Positions 25,706 to 37,269 are shown, numbered from the stretch's first letter. The stretch: DNA of 64,000 nucleotides from Oculina patagonica (GCF_052425735.1 NC_135764.1:27280001-27344000), one strand, 5' to 3'. Notes: generated by a model from the sequence alone, not told the origin. A program made the numbers and translations.

Positions 25706-26408
25706 TAGCCAGCGTAGCTTGGAGTTCTAGTCAGTCGGGGAGAGCGAGAAATCGCGCGCGCGAGCAAAGCGACGGCGGAAGGCAGAAGGAAAGAAAGAAC
25801 GCCAGCCGCCAGACGCCTCTTAAACGGGAGAAATCTTTTCACGTAATTATGTAAATAATACGCGTAATTTGTGAAGACCGGAAATAAAAAGGTGACGTGT
25901 TCTGTCAAACTCACGTGTGGTACAGGATGTACAAAACAAATAAACCCCGGGAAAATTATCAGGCTCATATTAATTTTTGCAAAATGTCTGCAAATTCGGG
26001 AGGTCCAAAGAAAAATTCATCTGCGAGTCGAAGCGGGGGAAGAAAACCAGTTAAAGTTTCAAATGATCACTGCCGAGTTTGTTTGCCTGCAATAGCATCC
26101 ATTTGTAATTCACACTGCTTTGCTTCACTCGTCACTTGTCAAATGCTAATTGAGCGGCCTGAATTTTGCGTGCATGCGAATGAGTCATTTGGAATAAATT
26201 AAAGCCAACAAACCAATCACAGGACAGATAAGCAATTTTAGCCAATGGGAATTAGCGGCCTCTGGAGGCCGCTAATTCGAAAGATTTCTCCCGTTTAAGA
26301 GGCGTCTGGCGGCTGGCGTTCTTTCTTTCTGCCTTCCGCCGTCGCTTTGCTCGCGCGCGCGATTTCTCGCTCCCCCCGACTGACTAGAACGCCAAGCTAC
26401 GCTGGCTA
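25706..26408. mobile_element. MITE with ~130-bp TIRs (TAGCC...GGCTA) and 9-bp TSD
   Basis: TSD gaacagatg at 25697-25705 and 26409-26417; TIRs 25706-25839 and 26280-26408. Confidence 0.9.
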
Positions 26409-27445
26409 GAACAGATGAAGATTTTTTCAAACACTGGGGATTTGAATGGTTGAAGTCGTACTTGTTGGAGAGAGAGGTTCCAGTGGCAAATACAAATAAG
26501 CAAGGTTTAATACATCTTTGTCCATTTACGCATAGATTAGGGCTCAGTGCAATACAAAATGTTGAGGAAAGAACAAATAGAAAAGTAATGGAAGATGGAT
26601 ATGGGAGAATCATTCTCCCCGACCCATCTGGTTTAGTTTTTAATGGATGGGAAGGTGATAAACAGGGGATCGGCTATTTACCGAGTTAGAGGTTGAGTTG
26701 AGTTTGAGTTGAGTTTGAGTTGAGTTTGAGTTAAGATTGAGTTAAGATTGAGTTACCGTATTTCCAGTGTCTTTTCCTTTTTTTACAATAGAAAGTTCAA
26801 AATCGAAGGTTCTCATTATATTTACTGAAATAATACTTAACATCTTACTGACAAATTTACACTATTTCGCGTTTTACGCTAAGAACAATTCAGCTCTCGT
26901 GTTTTGTTGCTTGCAAATCATTACCTTTTATCGCGGTGTTGACTACAAGCAGTCCATCATTAATTTTCTTTCAGAGATAGTTTTATTCAGGCTATTCGAG
27001 AAACGCGAGAGGAAGAAAATAGGAGAGGCTAACATAATATTTTTTCTTTTGTCTCGCGCGTCGACTAGCTATGTTCAAACCGACATTTCAATTTTTGAAA
27101 CCCTCTATCCACCAGCTACTAAACTATTTTTTTTAAAGGCAAATGGAGACCCGATTAGAAAAATTAGTCTTAGCTCAGGGTTCTGGCTACAAAATTTAAT
27201 TTTGTGATACGAAACTGATTTCACCATTATCCCGCAGTTTCTCTGTCTAGCCTTTCTTCGGGCTAATGCGAATTCTTTCCCACGGCAATCGCACGATCAG
27301 ATCGGAATTCGTCTGAATGCCATGGTAACTCCACAATGGACAGAGAAATAATTCGCCTTTTCGAATTCTGGATATTTGGAGAACAACGTGTTTTAAGTGC
27401 GTTGAAGATCATTCTTATCATTTGTTTTGTCCATTACGGTCGATC

Positions 27446-30400
27446 ATGGAGTCTATAAGTAGCGATTCGGATTGTGACTCTGTTGCCTCCTACGCTGATG
27501 TAGTCAAAGGGGAGTCTCTTTTTAGTTCTTCACCAGCGCGCCTTACCAACAGCTGTTGGTTTAAATTCCAAGTCGAAAGTGAAGAAGAAGCAATGCAAAT
27601 TGCCTTAAAGAAATCTGCCAGTGATGCACAGGTAACTGTCCGTTTGCCGCATCGTTGGTTTTCTGATACGAGAAAAAGGAAAAGCCTATGTTTTATCTGC
27701 TTTAAAAATTTAGGGTGACGAAATATCTGATGATGACAGCCTTGAAACCACAACCCCTGGATTTAAAGAAATCAGCAAGCCACGCGTGAAGGTAAAAACC
27801 TTTCGTTTCGAAAACGTTTATTTATAATTGTTTGCGGTTGTATAGGCATGTGCATAGGATTTGTCATAAAAGAAGTTAATAACTTTGAAGGTTGACGGCT
27901 TTCAGTCTGTAAGGCTAGTTTACACGGGCGATTTTTGTCGCGCTTCCCAGTGCGCTTCCCAGTGCAACTGTTGTCGCGCTCGAGCTCGCAGTGAAAATCG
28001 CAAGTGTAAAGTAGTGGCAATTTCGTAATGTTCAAAGCTTCTGCGATATCAGGGCGATAGAATTGCCGTCTGTTTACACTTGCAATTGCGCTTTCGTGCA
28101 ATTTTCTTCGCGAGCTCGATCGTGACAAAAGTTGCACTGGGAAGCGCAGGAAAAAAAAATAGAAGGCCAGGTTCGGACCATCGGAAAGATTATGAGGGGG
28201 GGGGGGGGGGGGGTGGGGGTTCTCACGTTGAACGCTCTCATCCGTACGGATTTCTTTTCTTTTTACGGTAAGATGTTATACATGATTTTTGCAACTAATT
28301 GTCCATCCTGAAAAGGGTATAGGTTGACAAGCGCGACAAAAGGCAAGTGTGATGGTTTGGAAAAGTGGTCACAGGAGTCAAGTGACAAGTTTCAAGTGAC
28401 AAGTTTTTGTTTTGCAACATGAAGTATATTTCACCCTAAATATGGGGCAAATTATTATTAAAAAATAGAAATGGTGGCGTTTGGGAAATTTCCAGTTTCT
28501 TCAGTTCAAATTTGTGCACCCCCTCCTAACAAAAATCCCGGATCCGCCCCTGAATTTTAATCACTCTTGAGTCCGTGAATTGATACTGTTTTTTTTTTCC
28601 TTTCTAGAAAACACCTGAAATGTTTGAATCTTGGGAGGAGGAGGATTACTGTCCTGGAGAACCTCAAATACCACTGGGAAGTTACAAATACAAGAATGTA
28701 TGTAGAAATCATTACTTATAATCATTATTTTTTATAATGGCCATTGGAAACCCTCGAATTCTCTTCTATATGTCCAGGTTTTTCTCTGTATATTCTAGTC
28801 CAATTATAAAAATGAGAATTTAATCCGTGTCAAAGATAAGTATCTTTAGTATCGAGACAGAATCTACCATGGCATGGGGAAAAGAGCAGAAGTCTGGGTT
28901 CTAGTATGGTCTGTCCTTGGCCACAACAGATATATTCTGGATAGCGTAGAGGTTTTTTTCTCTCTAAATTTCGGCAAAATTAATTAAGGAAGACATCATA
29001 AATAATTCTAATATGGTATACTGACACAGTATTGATGTTCAATCGTTAGGTCAAAGACTTTCCGAAAACCAAGGGAGGATCCTCTCTTTCGGAAACAAAG
29101 AAATTAGGTGACGTAAAGGGAAAGAAAAAAGTGGTTTCTACAAATAAGGTGAGCCACTGTTTACATTTTTCTCCGTTCAGATCGTTGACTTGTAGATTCG
29201 TTTTAGCATTTTGAAGCGAACACGATTTAGTTAGCAAGCACGTGCATCTAAGTGGTGAATTATTATGCTAATAACTTTGCCATATTTTTTGCCTCTTATC
29301 GTTTTTTTTTCATAGAACATTCATAGAGCAGATGGGAAAGCAATACCAGAGGTTTTCATTGATCTAACGTGCGACTCCCCGGAAAAGAGGTATTTTGGGC
29401 TTGAAGCACTGGAGCACGAGCTTGTAGCGGGATCCAGGGGTATTCCCCGCCCCCCACCGTCGAAAACATATTGAAAGCTAAGGTTGTCTGAGACAGTATT
29501 TCGTGTTTTTGAAGGCAGTTTGATACGAGAGAGGGCAGGCAAAAGCAAACGCAAAAACATGAATACTTCTAGAATTTACAAGATCATTTTGGTGACTGAA
29601 TCATGTCGTGACTTACTATTTTCTTTTTACACAGTACATAAAACAAAAATTGACACAAAATAGGTAACGTTTTTTTTTTAAATCAAACTGATCTGAATTG
29701 ACCTTAGCCTTTCCCACGCAACTTCATTTATGGCTGACTAAAACTCATGATGTACTTCCAAGGTAATATCAGTTTCAAATACCGGCAGTTGAGTTTGTCT
29801 GCAGTGCAGGCTAATAGTAATAAGTGGTCTGTGCAAATAATTAAAAAGTGGCCAATGACGGGAAATAACGTCCATGTCGATAAACTACCTCTAGAACTGT
29901 AGAATATGTAACGTGCATTTAAACAATTGTCTTCTTATGTCCTAGGCCGAAGAAGGAACGAAGGTCAACAGAAAGCTCAGACGATGATGATTCCGGCAAC
30001 GCAGACTTCATTAAAAAAAGGTGAGTGGTGGTACTTTCATTCGTCATTTAAAATAAGTGAAACGCCACAAATAACAAACATCCTCTGCATGGTCACAGCA
30101 AGCAAGCTCAGAAGATAACTTACTCTTACCTAAATTTCAGTACATGTAGAATTACTAAATTTGTTTCAATCCTTATTGTTGATCATTATAGGAAGAAAGT
30201 CAAGCTGGATCCGTCTTTATGGTACGGAGTTGACGTTGAAGCGGTGAATGAGTTACCCTATGATATCGACGGCACTAGGGTATTTCAAGTTCGTTTTGAC
30301 AGAGATGAGCGTAACGTTCGAGATGGCCGCAGTTGGAAACCCTGGGTCACCTCAAGCCGGAAGGGTTTTCGTGGAAAGCGTAACGTTCAATCTTGTAAGG

Positions 30401-33400
30401 GCTCTTAATTACCTTTGCAAAAACAACAGGTGTCCTTACGAAAAGCAATTCGGAAAGGCAAACAACGTTCAATTTGTTAAAGCTGGAGGAAAATATCGTT
30501 GCAGATCTTGCAATGGCAAAGGCGAGTACATTTCCTGTCCCGCTAGAAAGGTCAGTGAGTATCCACAGGATTCTGCCTTTGCAACCATTTACCATCTTGG
30601 AACTCATACTTGCACAGCTAAACGTAAGCCCAAGTTATATGCAACCAGCGATATTGAACAATTTTTTAAAACACATTCAATGGTTAAGCCCTCCGCCGTT
30701 CCAACTGCAAAACTGACAACCATGATCAGAGAAGGCAAAACGTGGTCGGAAGTTGAGGACGTCGCCGAAGCTATGCTGGACAAAAACAAGGTGAAAAATA
30801 TTAAAGCCAAAGTGGTTAAGAGGAAATCCGCCTGGACTTCGAGTAGTTATTGGACAAAATTATGTACCAAAACTATTTACACCTGATTGCAAGCTTTTGT
30901 GTTACTGCTTCAAATATCTTATCGAAAGAAATCTTTTCTAACAACACCACACATCGAAAACACATTTTGAAGTTCCGCTGAATTCCACTGAATCGCTTAA
31001 GACGAATTTACAAAATGGCTACACGTGAGATTTTGCCTATACCTTGTGAACTTTGAAATTCATTTTCTCAGACTCTGATAAGAAATTGTTGTTGGTGTTA
31101 TCACGGATAATTACTTACATCTTTACCTTTTATTAAGGGTAGGAAATAACGCAATAGGATTTAAATTATTCTTGAAATTGATTTTTGTCCAACTTTAATA
31201 AATATTACTCGACTTCCTAGTGGATTCCGTCTTAATAGCATGCATCCCCACGGGCACAACTTTGATGCTGTTGCAGAAATTAAGAAAAAAACAGATGAAA
31301 AAGATCCGTACCTGATTTGGAAGATTAATAATCGTCATTTCAATAATGGGCTTGGAAGCTTGGTCTTTAAGATGAGCAAAGAAAAAGCCGAGATGTGCGT
31401 TCAAATGGACAAAGATCAAAGTGAGCATCCACTCTCAAAAGAGTTCTGTTTTCTTGATGCAGTACACAGCAGATGCCAGGGCTTCAAAACACTCACCCTT
31501 TGGGTGTGGCATCCAACACTGAATGAGCTTGTCAACTTAGCTACAATGGAGTGTGAGGCGGAGTCTAGTCTCGTAATACAGTCGTTTTGGAATAATGTAA
31601 ATGAGGTAACTGTGATCATGTTTTTACTTAATCAACGAGCGCCCAGTAGCTTCGATGCAGTTTTTTTATCGGATACTTATCCATCCTTTGTAGAGACTGG
31701 GGCCTGAATTGAAAGTTCGAAAACTAGGATATTTCATATTATAATCCATCAAATATTTTTGCGCGCGCAATTGGTCTAAACACGTCACGTGATGCAGTCA
31801 AAACTGGTGACTATTTAGTAAATAAACCCCTTCAGGCGGCTGGTATGTCGGAGGATAATGCCCGTGGCGGGTAGATTGTCCGAAAAATAAACATTTCGCT
31901 TCTCGGGCAAATGTGAAATTTTAAGGACAATCTATCCGCCAAGGGCATTATACTCCGACATACCAGCAAGCCAGAAAGGGGTTTATTTATTTTATAATTA
32001 ACCTTCCCATTAATTTTCTTCAACGCGCTTCATTGCGGGAAAAAGGCAAAACCTACAGCGTGCGATAATCACGGCATAATTTAGTTAAAATAAATGCAAG
32101 TCGATAGGTTTCGAATTTCTTTTTTAACACTGTGATTTTATTAAAACGTTAGACTTTTACGTTTGTTTTGCACTGCGGATTTCAAATCGGACGGGGTATA
32201 TTGGCTGATACCCGTCGTCAGATTTTGTACCACGTGATGTGTTTTGTCCAATGAGCGCGCACGGAAATTAATCGGTGGGTTATAACAGATGATATTCCCC
32301 AAGTGATATTTCCCAGTTTTCGAAGTTTGCAATTTACATTCGCACGTTTAGTTTTTATCCCAAGTAAATTGTTAAAATGTATAGAACTAAACATTTTGAA
32401 CAGACTAACAATATTTTGAGCGCCGACAGAATTACTTTGACGTTTAAACCTTTAAGAAAAGGTCTCCCAAAATGCGGCCTTGTGAAAAAATATTTGAAGG
32501 ATAATAAACACAATAGCATCCATTTGGCTTCAAAAATATGCAAGGATATTGTCCTTGGACAAATCTGTTCCTCGAAGTTCACAACTTTCCTCGAGCTTCG
32601 CTCTCGGAAAACTGTTCACTTAATTCTCGGAACAGATAATGTCTGCGGACAAATATCCGTGCATATTTTGGCGCCAAATGAAGGCTATTGTTTATTTTAA
32701 GGGATGAGTATCCTTTGTGAGTCTTTATACCAAAAGAATTAGAACACTTTTGAATCAGTTTATCTTTTAATACTGAAGCATTCTGAACTAGGATTTCACT
32801 GGACAGTTAAGAAACAGTTTAAAATGGGTATTTGCCCAAACGTGGCATGTTGAGGTCGAATACTTGAAGCCTTCATTGAAACTGAGATTTTTGTCGCTTT
32901 AATTTTACTCATCTTTGTTGGAACACTTAACAGTTTTTAGTGTACAACCCCACGACCAAAATCGTCAGTTGAATTAAAAAGTTAAACGGAGGAGAAAAGG
33001 AAACAATGTCAAGGATACTAATGCATGGGTCCTTCCCTTTTCTAACGTACATGTCGTACGCCTTAAAGTCGTACCATTACCGGGGTCTTAATTGTAACAG
33101 TTTGAATGTTGTTTTCTAGGTTTTACGAGATTTTACTGGGGACGAGAACTACCTATTTAATCCAGCGGGATGGATGTTCGATGAAGCTGGCGGAAACTGG
33201 GATGCAATCGAAAACGTGTTTGGCAAGGAAGCTTTAGAACAATGTGTATCCTGTGAATTCCATTTTTTTCAGTGCTGCAATAGGCAGGTACACACAGACT
33301 GGAGTGATAAGGCAAAGCACAGGTTTAAAACTCTCGCCAGGAGTATTTTTGAGGCGCCAACACCTTATCAATATGATCAAGCCAGGAAAGAACTCATAGC

Positions 33401-34668
33401 ATTTTCACAGGAAAAACCTGGAAAACGAGGTCAGGTCGTTAGCTGGTTCAAATGGTGGCATAAGAGAAGGACCCACATATTTAAGGCATTCAAATGTGGC
33501 GCACCACTTGCACCAAAACGTCAATTTAGCAGAGGTTGGTCACTCTCAGTGGGCCAAGAAAGGATCCTACAGGTTAACCCTTGCAATGGCCGCTGAGGAG
33601 GACGTGGCAGAAGCAATTATGCTGTCAAAAAAACTAGAATCTTACGGTTATGGAAATTATAAAGGAGGCCAACATCGAAGCCAAAGCGACAGACTTAAAG
33701 CTAACTATTTTCAGCAAATGGCAAGAGCGAAAGCCTTCGCAGAAGAAATTTCCGCTGGCGTTGTCGACAATACCTTATATGTAGCTGCAGAGTCTTCTAG
33801 AGCTTCTACTGTTGATGCGAACTGCTCCCATAGAGCGACACGCAAACGAAAACGTCAAGTAAGTGTTTTCAGCGATGGAACTCACCTAGAGTCTTCGTCT
33901 TCTGAGGATGATTCACAGCAAACCGCAGACAAAGATGGTGCGAAGGAGGATAAGCGTGACGGCCGTTTCAGAACAACTGCCAGCAAGGCATTTCAGCGCT
34001 CACTTGAACTTGCCAAAAAAGAAAAATTAGTAGTTGTTGACTCCAATGAACTTGGAAGAAATGAAAGGGAATTTACGATTAGATCTGGACTAAACACCTA
34101 CAATGTAACGATTTCTGAGCATCCAACCTGCGATTGTCCCTACGCAAATAGTGCAAATATCTGTAAGCATGTTCTTTTTGTATTGCTGAATTTCTTTCAA
34201 GTTAAAGAGGGCGACTATCGTCTTCATCAGAAGGCACTAACAAAAAGTGAAGTTGATGCGTTGTTCAAGGGACTGGACTTAAAATCTCCAACAGGGACTA
34301 AACCTACAAATGCAGCCATTTTCAACAAGCACAAAGAAGCAAAAAAGAAGCAAGTTTGGCAAGTACAGCGATGTAATACACAACCTGGTCCCAAACCGAG
34401 GTGTGCAAAACCAGGCTGTCAGAATCAGTTTTCAGCGGGAGATATTTGCATTTCAGTAGAGGGCCTGTATGTACCTTCAAATGAAACAGCTGATGGAAGG
34501 AGCTTTGCGGTGGAACGTACTTTTCGATTTTGTGCAAGAAAAGAATGTATTAACACACAACCAAAACAAAGCAATTTGATTGTGCCTCCAATGACTGTCA
34601 TGCTTCCAGAAAATGTCAATGTTACACCTGAAGAATATCAGAATTTAATTAACGAGGAGATAGTTTGA
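27446..34668 (+). pseudogene. Spliced MULE-type DDE transposase (UIM-SIM-NLS-ZnF-DDE-SWIM-ZnF) with two frameshifts; exons 27446-27631, 28608-28697, 29050-29148, 29316-29389, 29946-30020, 30192-~30821, 31239-31605, 33120-34668
   Basis: Exons are phase-compatible, except that the exon-6 donor is unclear. Catalytic-type motifs CFLDAVH, MFDEAGG, SCEFH (CxxH) and NLAEVGH; SWIM CDC..CKH. Frameshifts at ~30406 and ~33515; AATAAA at ~34847. Confidence 0.8.
31730..32700. repeat. Composite palindromic non-autonomous repeat within the transposase intron
   Basis: Hairpin 31821-31990 (aataaacccctt...aaggggtttatt) nested in an inverted pair 31741-31791 / 32231-32285. Confidence 0.55.
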
Positions 34669-37269
34669 TCATACATTAGAGAATAATGAACGGTATAGTG
34701 GACAACACAAGATCGAAGTAGAGCTGATTGTTTTATTTACGTTAAAATTTAGTATCAACCACCATGTTGCGTAACATTTAATATTGTTGGATTCAATTTA
34801 GACATTGTATTTTAGTTTATTTATTTTTTTATTTTAACAACACGGAAATAAACAAAAATGTATTGGATTGTTTTTGGAAAATGTTTCGCATTTTTTTCTT
34901 TTCTTTCACCGGCCCAGTGTACCAGCAGTTCGTTCAATGCGCTTTCACTGAATAATGAACAAAAAAAAGTTAGAAGGGGACTGGGTGGGTGGGGGGGGGG
35001 GGGGGGTGTGGTGGGTTAGGACACGAAATGAGGATAACATAATTCTCTAAAATACAAAAGTATCAGTTTTCTTGCTTATTTGGTCGTAAAAAGTGATTCG
35101 CATCTTAAATTAAACACTTTTTTAGCAAATACAAATGGAAAACGGTAACTCAATCTTAACTCAATCTTAACTCAAACTCAACTCAAACTCAACTCAAACT
35201 CAACTCAACCTCTAACTCGGTCATTATCTTATCTCGATAAACAGAGCTTCCCGAGTTGTCTCAGATCAGCATGGAAAAATATTGGGATGAAAGTGAGTAA
35301 ACTTGGAGCTGTATTAAGACTTGAATATTATTGTTTTGAAATGTGTCTTTGTAAAACTCTGTAAAACTGCATTCCAACCGTCCAATATAAGGATTCAAAC
35401 AATATTCTATAAAAAAATATTGTCTGTTGAAAAAGTGTCTTAAGTTATACTTACCCCAAGGCCTGAATGAAAGATCCATTTTTACTAATGGTAACATGCA
35501 AGTACTTTTCAATAAAATATACAAGTTTGATTCTTCACCAGTTTGTTTTGTGTAGACTTTGTACCCCTGAAAAACATATAATTCTTACTTGATAGACAAA
35601 CATTCAAATTAAGAAAACAAGGCCATCAGCACTAAGAGATGGGAAGTCTGTTTATCTTGCAAAATATCATGGTATAAGTGCCAATATTGTATATTGCTTT
35701 ATAAAAGCAAAGGTTTGTGGTGTTTCTATCTTTTTGATTTGCTACATTTACAATGCACATAAACCTCATGTTTTCTGAAACAAATACAAGCCAATTTTAA
35801 ATGAATCATACAAAGAGCAACATAACTTATCAGGACATCACCTCACACTGTGATTGTAGCTTTCTTTGTTTTGTAAATGAATATACTGTTATCAATAATG
35901 ACATACCGGTATATTACAAACCTCACACGGTGTTTGAGAAACGATAACATCTGCTGCGCCATATGCAGCTAGGATAATCCTACAGAAGCAGTCTGGAAAT
36001 ATTTCCGATGCCCTATAATAAGTTTGACTTATTTTGACTCGATTTCTCATTGATTTTTTTAAGCCGATGTGCAGCCAAAAAACATACTGAGTGAACCTGA
36101 TTACATTGCAGGGTAAGAGGGAGCTGTAAACATGTGGCAAGGATTTGCCACTATGATATTGAGAAAAGTGCTAGAGGGGAAAATATGTTGGTGACTTCAA
36201 GGGAGCAGGCATGGGGTCGGCCTTCTATCAAACATCAACATGTTGATATACATGTAATTGTAGTGACAAGGCTTGGTGAATATCCAAACATGCACCCAAG
36301 AAACTGACTGTTTAAGGGACTGGTCATTATTTATGTTGAGTTGGGGGAGGGAAAAATTAATTTGAAACATAAAAATTTGCCAGAACCCTCCTCTTCAGGC
36401 CTGAAAATGGCAAATGCCTTCCCCCTCTCATATCAATATTCTTAATATTGTATGTATTTAGGGTTTTTTTGGTAAATTTTGCATACATAGATATGACAAG
36501 CCAATGCCACAATTGACAAAATGGACTTGGCGAATGTGTGGTACGAGCAAAGAATAAATTACCTTGTAGATAATAAAAATGTCATTGTCTCTATCAGCTG
36601 GCGTAATAAGTTACATAATTGGTAAAGCGCATAGACCAGTCTCCAGTTTTTCGCCCACTTCTGGATGTTTGCTGAATAGGTAGATCATTATCTTCTTTGT
36701 TGTCAGTACCACTGCTGTCACTTTCACTGGTTGGAATCCCAAAATTTGCAATCAAGGTGCCACTTTTCAGATGTTAGACACCAGCTATTGAACCTTGGAA
36801 GATAATTATTTTTTCAAATATTTTTTTCCAAGGTGGAAAGCAATTTTTTCTGTGTTATGTTATTTTAAAGACATGTTTTGCCACTTTGCAGGCTATTGAA
36901 CCAAGAAGTATTTACTAGTTAATTTTGATTATGCAGATGAAATCAAACATTGAAACAGGCTGTTCTGGATTTATTCTTATTAAAGTGTAAAATATTAAAG
37001 CAATGAAGTTTATGACAATGTTTTGTTTTACTCTCAGCTGTTGTCTGTCTGTTGTCCATCTTCATCATCTGGATCCTTGAAATTATTTCATTTCTTAAAA
37101 GTTATCCCATTTACCAAAGCACAAACCAGACCTCTTAAAAAACCTAAAAAATATATGACCCCCCTCTATTAATTCTTTTTGAAAAGAATAAGCCCCCATC
37201 CAGCCAATTTAAAACAGCCTTGACCCCCCCCCCCCCCTCTTTTTCCCTCCCTCCACCACTTTCCATATC

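Follow-up and report, generated by a model that had tools for sequence, protein, structure and literature searches.

A defective copy of a probably young Mutator-like element family in the coral Oculina patagonica, encoding a transposase with a SIM-like motif and a putative zf-PARP-like finger

Mutator-like elements (MULEs) are recognised by a target site duplication (TSD) of 8–11 bp, typically 9 bp, and by long terminal inverted repeats (TIRs). Rehavkus elements carry a PHD finger within their transposase and a minisatellite ahead of the 3′ TIR. Classical MULEs and their domesticated kin (MuDR MURA, Jittery, FAR1/FHY3 and ZSWIM1/3/9) combine a WRKY-GCM1 finger, an IS256-like DDE core with a CxxH motif and a SWIM domain (Babu et al. 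2006, PMC1702500); MULEs carrying an OTU domain are on record from Medicago (PMC1702500). The cnidarian MULEs in Repbase include the Ghost subgroup Cnidaria, made up of relatives of MuDR-1_NV (PMC6446971), and MuDR-6_HM of Hydra, which has an OTU domain and is listed without TIRs (Dupeyron et al. 2019, PMC6446971). The locus analysed here lies in a stretch of 64,000 nucleotides from Oculina patagonica (GCF_052425735.1 NC_135764.1:27280001-27344000; the window). Positions 26666–35235 of the window are very likely a dead copy of a young, multi-copy, autonomous cut-and-paste MULE, whose intact sister copies encode a transposase of 1047 residues in eight exons.

The Oculina element shares with classical MULEs the order of WRKY-GCM1 finger, DDE core with CxxH and SWIM, the 9-bp TSD and the long TIRs. 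Unlike those elements, its gene is split into eight exons, its clade is undetected by the Pfam MULE model, and the protein adds a SIM-like (SUMO-interacting motif) N-terminal module and a C-terminal zf-PARP-like finger, neither of which is mentioned in PMC1702500 or PMC6446971. The host of MuDR-6_HM is also a cnidarian, and in relatives of the Oculina element an OTU domain is likewise associated with a MULE transposase; the Oculina element itself differs in having no OTU exon and in having complete TIRs and TSDs, a separation made by description and not by sequence. Rehavkus, again compared by description, has the 9-bp TSD in common with the Oculina element, in which the short repeats are located within both TIRs and the finger has a predicted fold that is zf-PARP-like and not PHD. 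Four short diagnostic peptides of the clade were not found in the supplementary files of PMC6446971, a weak negative, as the alignments there may be gapped. The original prediction, made from the sequence of the window alone, had proposed a possibly undescribed lineage. This is only partly right: the SIM module and the zf-PARP-like finger were not found in the literature searched, but the WRKY-DDE-SWIM core and the OTU-carrying MULEs are already on record (PMC1702500, PMC6446971).

The element, its copies and its gene

The last open reading frame (ORF), used as a protein query against the coral's own genome, gave seven matches of 98–100% identity on different chromosomes; with the DNA search, copies of this identity are placed on at least 7 chromosomes. 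In the genome DNA search, similarity to other copies spans window positions 26659 to 35241, and at least five full-length copies were found at 98–99% identity, together with deletion derivatives. The 9-bp TSD is identical on both sides in 10 of the 13 copies examined, internal-deletion derivatives of 1.76–3.7 kb among them. The limits of the window copy were placed at 26666 and 35235 because GATAAACAG flanks it on each side but is present singly at an empty site on another chromosome (L027, G000:C5:30265500-30270000), where the flanks are 99% identical and the element is absent. L027 may be an alternative haplotype that was retained, or else a segmental duplication, itself recent, that predates the insertion. 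The TIRs are about 95 bp long (15 imperfect and about 80 perfect bases), and the right end reads GAGATAAGATAATGA as reverse complement. An intact eight-exon ORF of 1047 codons is present in copy L013 (G000:C1:31725465-31734617), which served as reference; L014 and L015 differ from it by 1 and 6 amino acids. A related element of about 90% identity from another assembly (L040; ENA ERZ25067872) has an ORF of 1043 codons with all splice sites kept. The family bears all structural hallmarks of a recently mobile MULE, its coding capacity is intact in the sister copies, and it is probably still mobile in the coral genome.

The gene model was read from the natural intact copy L013 and not from repaired frames of the window; all its exon borders are GT-AG (Table 1). 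Compared with L013, the window copy has 4 additional bp (TTAA) at 30405–30408, a 416-bp insertion at 30816–31231 and 1 additional bp at 33515. The two small lesions are the frameshifts of the original prediction, and both are real with respect to the intact copies. However, the gap at 30816–31231 that had been taken for an intron was rejected as such, being a TTAA-flanked repeat insertion absent from intact copies, and one short exon had been missed; the SIM, assigned to exon 4, lies in exon 5 of the corrected model. The peptide motifs quoted at the time are all present where they were placed, including the finger, the D / D-CxxH / E core, the SWIM tail and the C-terminal Cys finger. The basic stretches KRPKKERR and KKRKKVK, which resemble a nuclear localisation signal (NLS), are present as well, each across an exon junction.

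The protein begins with a disordered N-terminal region (exons 1–6), followed by a GCM1/WRKY-type finger, an IS256/MULE-type DDE core with CxxH, an extended SWIM and a C4 finger. The N-terminal region contains a UIM-like (ubiquitin-interacting motif) stretch, acidic/Ser patches, the SIM-like V-F-I-D-L-T with S-P-x-K, and the two NLS-like basic clusters. An alignment of 13 rows (A1), in which exon pieces from four elements are combined with intronless Oculina paralogue families and with a metagenomic protein of 33% identity, conserves the two D residues, SCEFHF (with the CxxH) and N..AE..HS. For the fold searches, the paralogue L035, which is 33% identical, was modelled with AlphaFold (predicted local distance difference test score, pLDDT, 67). 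Against the PDB, Foldseek matched this model to the IS256-family ISCth4 transposase (E = 7.6e-4), Hermes and the GCM domain 1odh_A (probability 1.0, template modelling score 0.50). Against Swiss-Prot models the matches were FAR1/FHY3/FRS (E about 1e-11 to 1e-12), ZSWIM1/3/9, K. lactis alpha3, the Foldback NOF protein and IS256-family transposases. The sequence models weigh against the assignment: neither Pfam MULE (PF10551) nor DBD_Tnp_Mut matched the intact ORFs or six relatives at E ≤ 5, Pfam WRKY reached only E = 0.18, and in scans that covered every piece of the window, the intact ORFs and the six relatives, SWIM was the only domain reported. Membership of the Mutator superfamily is nevertheless settled, because the matches of the predicted fold come together with a 9-bp TSD and long TIRs. 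The spliced Mutator-like transposase of the original prediction is supported, with fold matches for both the GCM1/WRKY-type finger and the MULE/IS256-type DDE core. The clade is large, since 4,653 proteins among 1.84 billion representatives match its profile at E ≤ 1e-3.

Several repeats lie in or near the element. The 416-bp repeat that interrupts exon 7 has at least six separate genomic copies at 98–99% identity (e.g. C4:56826881, C12:4242971 and C8:23368047) and resembles a TTAA-targeting miniature inverted-repeat transposable element (MITE). At 30405–30408, CTTACC of the intact copies has become CTTAATTACC, which could be the excision footprint of a TA- or TTAA-targeting element. One other copy, L016 (G000:C13:5553130-5562516), shares all three lesions of the window; it is 5′-truncated, beginning at window-equivalent 27064, has a partial internal duplication within the nested repeat, and its flanks differ from those of the window. 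Intron 7 contains about 1.15 kb of nested high-copy repeats (L013:5200-5800, window about 31790–32390) in a stretch absent from L040; in the RNA-like contigs described below, these repeats have a depth above 1000 and many rearranged joints. About 260 bp upstream of the MULE, at window 25706–26409, is a repeat of about 700 bp with inverted ends of about 133 bp. It has at least 25 genomic copies at 92–97% identity and is probably another MITE family.

Table 1. Features of the element in the window (positions counted from the first letter of the window)
Feature	Position	Strand	Details
Whole element	26666–35235 (8,570 bp)	+	Defective copy of an autonomous MULE family of about 8.1 kb; from genome DNA search, TSD and empty site
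Left TSD copy	26657–26665	.	9 bp, GATAAACAG; identical 9-mer at 35236–35244
Right TSD copy	35236–35244	.	9 bp; pairs with 26657–26665; single copy at the empty site
Left TIR	26666–26762	+	15 imperfect terminal bases (GGGATCGGCTATTTA), then about 80 perfect bases of 11-bp GAGTTGAGTTT-type units
Right TIR	35150–35235	-	One 11-bp unit fewer than in L013
Exon 1 (E1)	27446–27631	+	62 codons from ATG; UIM-like ESEEEAMQIALKKSASD at 27575–27625
Exon 2 (E2)	27714–27791	+	Acidic/Ser-rich; 98.7% identical in L040, AG/GT sites kept
Exon 3 (E3)	28608–28697	+	FESWEEE.Y.PG.P..PLG motif; exon conserved in Porites
Exon 4 (E4)	29050–29148	+	Basic/Ser-rich
Exon 5 (E5)	29316–29389	+	SIM-like VFIDLT, then SP.K site CDSPEK(R); VFIDLTCDSPEK at 29352–29387
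Exon 6 (E6)	29946–30020	+	Acidic Ser/Asp patch; halves of the two NLS-like basic clusters
Exon 7 (E7)	30192–31605	+	GCM1/WRKY-type zinc finger 30322–30613; first half of DDE core, first D in CFLDAV 31447–31467
Nested repeat insertion	30816–31231	.	416 bp, TTAA-flanked, interrupts E7; absent from L013, L014 and L015
Exon 8 (E8)	33120–34668	+	Second D 33171–33194; CxxH 33249–33266; E motif NLAEVGHSQW 33523–33552
Exon 8 C-terminal modules	34129–34278; about 34327–34665	+	SWIM plus tail; predicted C4 zf-PARP-like finger, quoted Cys finger 34399–34548

N-terminal exons and their motifs

The SIM-like motif of exon 5, VFIDLTCDSPEK(R), has a short hydrophobic core and an acidic/Ser flank and is located in a disordered region. 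The SIMs of PIAS proteins and RNF4 consist of V/I-V/I-D-L-T followed by acidic or Ser residues. Like these, the Oculina motif has I-D-L-T at its core, with V/F/V-V before it and D-S or acidic residues after it; unlike these, it continues into an S/T-P-x-K site and not into a CK2-type acidic Ser run. In L040, the motif reads VVIDLTCDSPQKR (SIM stretch VVIDLTCDSPQK) with the canonical VVIDLT, and in the Porites element it reads TIDLTKDSPVKR (containing TIDLTKDSPVK), where the gene model additionally carries LIVVSDGDES. Two copies, VVDLTISPVKK and VVDLTISPVKN, are found upstream of the 33%-identical P0012, VIDLT is found upstream of the Oculina paralogue L036, and L033 carries the motif. A metagenomic element of 75% identity on a TARA contig (L041:1381-2269), with endonuclease-like ORFs of a retrotransposon without long terminal repeats inserted upstream, has VIDPT at this position.

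The pattern [VI]DLT occurs nine times in the N-terminal extensions of 85 representatives, whereas 1000 shuffles gave 1.03 ± 0.98 and never more than 4. Each of the nine is located 40–102 residues upstream of the conserved core, which itself has one occurrence in 62,775 residues. A generic SIM pattern with acidic/Ser flank was found in 12 of 77 linkers (3.5 ± 1.8 in shuffles), and a SIM followed by [ST]P.[KR] was observed three times where 0.03 were expected. Because the motif recurs in relatives and is enriched and position-specific compared with shuffles, sequence comparison makes it a conserved module of the clade. The SIM of the original prediction is thus beyond chance: Porites and L040 keep it, as do many of the cluster representatives and the metagenomic relative of 33% identity. 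We lean towards a functional SIM, which would tether or regulate the transposase through SUMOylated nuclear proteins; SUMO binding is suggested because of the likeness to the PIAS and RNF4 motifs. To regard the adjacent S/T-P-x-K as a site for a cyclin-dependent kinase (CDK) is speculation. The searched literature gave nothing relevant on a SIM in combination with a transposase. A search of the genome with the Rad60-SLD family retrieved no unspliced SUMO ORF; what it gave was polyubiquitin, arrays of ubiquitin-like repeats, an exon of NIP45/Rad60-like type and a ubiquitin-ribosomal fusion. The arrays (G000:C11:19.21-19.35 Mb and 21.61-21.79 Mb, also C1232) are long open frames of up to 843 residues of many tandem ubiquitin-like, Rad60-SLD-scoring repeats and differ from the genome's ordinary polyubiquitin gene, which lies at C6:2511546-2512898.

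The second motif, ESEEEAMQIALKKSASD in exon 1, fits the UIM pattern ac-ac-ac-x-hydrophobic-x-x-Ala-x-x-x-Ser-x-x-ac (where ac is an acidic residue), as judged by eye and by regular expression. It is identical in L040, with two synonymous changes. Outside this closest subfamily it is absent from Porites, Actinostola, the paralogues and the 163 database relatives examined, so of the two motifs put forward in the original prediction the SIM is conserved in homologues and the UIM is kept only in L040. Two further candidates were rejected. In exon 8, the UIM-like AAEEDVAEAIMLSKKLE corresponds in the alignment to a helix of the core that is conserved in paralogues with no UIM, and the weak exon-1-like match PSQNKNSCYTRYQV in Porites is regarded as chance, no UIM lying downstream of it.

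Relatives of the element have another connection to ubiquitin, the OTU cysteine-protease domain, which was found in 23 of 75 N-terminal extensions. OTU exons are present in the Porites element and upstream of the Oculina paralogues L035 and L036, and in the Porites proteins P0177 and P0178 the OTU, the SIMs and the core lie within one spliced model. OTU similarity is absent throughout the Oculina and L040 elements, and the occurrence of a UIM in this OTU-less subfamily is suggestive only. The clade's link to the ubiquitin system is real but not new, because OTU-carrying MULEs are on record (PMC6446971, PMC1702500). A protein kinase domain was found in 3 of the 75 N-terminal extensions of relatives P0016-P0163 (best E = 6.5e-36); these may be fusions of gene models or real kinase-MULE fusions, and are of interest given the MEKK1-like SWIM described below.

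The UIM-like and SIM-like stretches could both be chance matches in a low-complexity acidic/Ser-rich tail that serves only nuclear import and spacing. Of the alternatives considered here, this one survives best, and we regard it as unlikely. Several observations count in its favour and against functional motifs. Pfam UIM (PF02809) gave no match on the 25-residue peptide even at E ≤ 10, where the HMMER filters may drop short matches; the UIM has the narrow distribution described above; the antisense strand of the loci has the bare pattern [VI]DL[TS] about as often (7 compared with 9); and the SIM-like motif is present in a minority of the relatives, about 10–20% of their gene models. What chance would explain poorly is that the extended [VI]DLT..SP.K recurs where the core is only 33% identical, that the SIM motif is ninefold enriched and position-specific, and that it becomes canonical in L040. 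In addition, the N-terminal exons and the core show the same purifying selection. The ratio of non-synonymous to synonymous substitution rates (dN/dS) between L013 and L040 is 0.24 for E1–E6 (p = 4e-5) and 0.23 for E7–E8; purifying selection acts on all exons. We therefore keep the SIM-like motif as a conserved module. For the UIM-like motif the outcome is different: it fits the consensus and is present in exon 1 as originally predicted, but it is confined to the subfamily, Pfam is silent and the splice from E1 to E2 was not observed, and a real ubiquitin binder is doubtful.

The splicing of the 5′ exons was assessed with RNA-like contigs from four runs (four studies, three organism labels), aligned to L013:1200-7199. 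Joints were found between E3 and E4 (GT..AG, three runs), between E4 and E5 (one run, X3) and between E7 and E8 (one contig). The last is a contig of 2316 nt (X3 record 14), which passes directly from E7 to E8 and has 103 unplaced bases upstream of E7. The original prediction had left its junctions to RNA evidence; these three are now seen in contigs, and E1–E2 is not. A multi-exon 5′ region is independently supported by the NCBI models P0177 and P0178 of Porites lobata, in which short N-terminal exons, homologues of E3, the SIM exon and E6 among them, are predicted to be joined to the core.

The missing joint leaves room for a reading in which exon 1, with its UIM-like motif, serves as 5′ leader or as an upstream ORF, translation beginning at the in-frame Met of exon 3. 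The contigs of the four runs do not contain an E1–E2 joint. Instead, intron 1 is crossed unspliced by contigs in all four, at a depth similar to that of the coding exons (in X3, 21 compared with 19 for exons 7–8), and with intron 1 retained the E1 frame stops at 27716–27718, and the E2 frame has a TAG at 27711–27713. These points weigh against a coding exon 1, with the reservation that the runs are only presumed to be RNA and that the evidence consists of contigs and not reads, contigs losing minor variants. Other observations disagree with a leader. The Met of exon 3 is not kept in Porites (KGPSNFESW), E2 can be translated only when spliced to E1, and contigs end at the E1 donor (run X7) and exactly at the E2 donor (run X3), which suggests branch points and hints at alternative forms. 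In L040, the E1 frame is kept through indels of 3 and 9 nt and the GT donor is conserved, whereas the frame that reads through intron 1 stops early. The dN/dS of E1 is 0.22 (8 synonymous and 8 non-synonymous changes; binomial p = 0.007); unlike dN/dS, the identity of exon and intron between L013 and L040 does not discriminate for exon 1 (0.90 and 0.89). A mere leader is accordingly improbable. Because of the dN/dS, the frame-keeping indels and the read-through stop in L040, which are evidence from evolution and not from transcripts, exon 1 is most likely coding and joined to E2.

SWIM and C-terminal finger

The SWIM is the one domain that Pfam recognises (E = 1.2e-5). Profile A1 aligned to the MEKK1 SWIM-RING fragment (PDB 9p40_A) with E = 3e-5 over 106 positions, from the CxH through a tail of about 35 residues. 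The structural neighbours of the module are ZSWIM8, from the chain comparison described below, and, in the Atlas and the AlphaFold database (AFDB), SWIM-RING, SWIM-ZZ-RING and MAP3K1-like proteins. In common with MEKK1 (MAP3K1) and ZSWIM2-like SWIMs, the Oculina module aligns over CxC..CxH and the helical tail, in agreement with the MEKK1-type SWIM that had been predicted. Unlike MEKK1 and the SWIM-RING E3 proteins, the Oculina protein contains no RING and no kinase; its SWIM belongs to a transposase, towards the C-terminal side, and precedes a Cys4 finger of PARP-like type. In the paralogous MULE family L036 (G000:C2:26913000-26922999, minus strand), the SWIM and the PARP-like end are replaced by a long Q/P-rich repeat (QQYGNPPQQY...) plus a different CxxC domain.

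In the C-terminal 110 residues or so, W, C, C, F, C and C are invariant, and P nearly so, in relatives down to 23% identity, and the domain was modelled with a pLDDT of about 90. An exhaustive structural comparison (VIA-align, 48,161 chains) placed zinc fingers of PARP1 and DNA ligase III in all of the top seven positions (Z 7.1–4.9, 79–86 residues aligned). The first six have Z 7.1–5.4 and root-mean-square deviations of 3.1–3.9 Å over 79–84 residues (residues 151–256 of the C-terminal model). ZSWIM8 comes next with Z 4.9 but matches the SWIM part, and any other fold on the C-terminal domain has Z of 3.8 or less. Foldseek gave the ligase III finger 1uw0 as best PDB match. The best sequence matches of the domain profile are to PARP1 and are non-significant, the first knuckle (basic-x-C-x2-C) being weakly similar. 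The predicted fold thus resembles PARP1 Zn1/Zn2 and the DNA ligase III finger, which are sensors of DNA breaks, as the original prediction of a finger reminiscent of zf-PARP had it. Unlike those fingers, the Oculina domain has ligands C-C-C-C with spacing C-x4-C, not C-C-H-C. The searched literature contained nothing relevant on zf-PARP together with a transposase.

Some of these results speak against a zf-PARP relationship. Pfam zf-PARP (PF00645) gives no match, a Z of 7.1 is rated middling, and the ligands are of the wrong type. A role in protein interactions, unrelated to PARP-type break sensing, would follow if the domain were instead a treble-clef or C1-like zinc module of a generic kind, or else a degenerate RING of the SWIM-RING E3 type. 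C1 domains and RINGs do occur lower in the same structural list (Z 2.6–3.8), and in the SWIM-RING and SWIM-ZZ-RING neighbours of the SWIM a RING follows at a similar distance. The points on the other side are that the best seven of the 48,161 chains, covering 79–86 of about 105 residues, are all from PARP1 or ligase III, with Z 7.1 compared with 3.8 for the next fold; that Foldseek and the sequence profile independently put ligase III and PARP1 first; and that four invariant Cys are too few for a RING. A generic or RING-derived module is therefore a rather poor prospect, and the C-terminal finger probably has a divergent zf-PARP-like fold.

Mobility, possible mechanism and meaning

The weakest alternative, a domesticated single-copy host gene derived from a MULE (compare FHY3, ZSWIM and MEKK1), would fit a multi-exon structure under purifying selection and the domesticated proteins among the relatives, but it is refuted by the family of many near-identical copies with TIRs, differing 9-bp TSDs and deletion derivatives and by the empty site, and with the window copy itself broken we give it practically no weight. 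The locus is thus best read as a dead member of a mobile family.

In the mechanism that we propose for this family, the GCM1/WRKY finger would bind the 11-bp subterminal repeats in the TIRs, and the DDE core would cut and join the DNA (cut-and-paste). Muta1, an animal MULE that has been studied, makes hairpins on the flanking DNA (PMC5499845). For the PARP-like finger together with the SWIM, the role may be to help hold DNA ends that are broken, nicked or in hairpin form, or to hold a partner protein. Via nuclear proteins that are SUMOylated, the SIM would dock or regulate the transposase, possibly with CDK controlling the SP.K site next to it. That ubiquitinated or SUMOylated chromatin is targeted, as the original prediction proposed, is something that we can only infer.

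A wider hypothesis, which we put forward tentatively and which has the odds against it, is that transposition in a large, mostly metazoan Mutator clade, with thousands of proteins, is tied to the host's SUMO and ubiquitin systems as well as to the sensing of DNA breaks. The N-terminal SIM, possibly gated by CDK, would dock on SUMOylated chromatin or repair factors; the OTU deubiquitinase, or the UIM in the Oculina subfamily, would handle ubiquitin; and the PARP-type finger would recognise the nicked or hairpin DNA of cut-and-paste transposition. If this coupling were true of the whole clade, the SWIM modules of animal MEKK1 and ZSWIM2 would descend from such transposases.

Mutator elements themselves are well known; the ties of eukaryotic DNA transposases to host chromatin and repair are mostly unknown. 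The most interesting parts of the present element are the clade-wide SIM module and the zf-PARP-like finger, neither of which was found described in the literature searched. A young family with intact copies, defined TIRs and TSDs, a SIM-like motif, OTU or UIM modules in its clade and a PARP-like finger is a concrete experimental system, and it opens the question of whether transposition is steered by SUMO/ubiquitin recognition and by the sensing of breaks. A living transposon clade is now linked to the extended SWIM found in MEKK1-type proteins, and for the annotation of the coral genome the locus flags an element that is probably still mobile.

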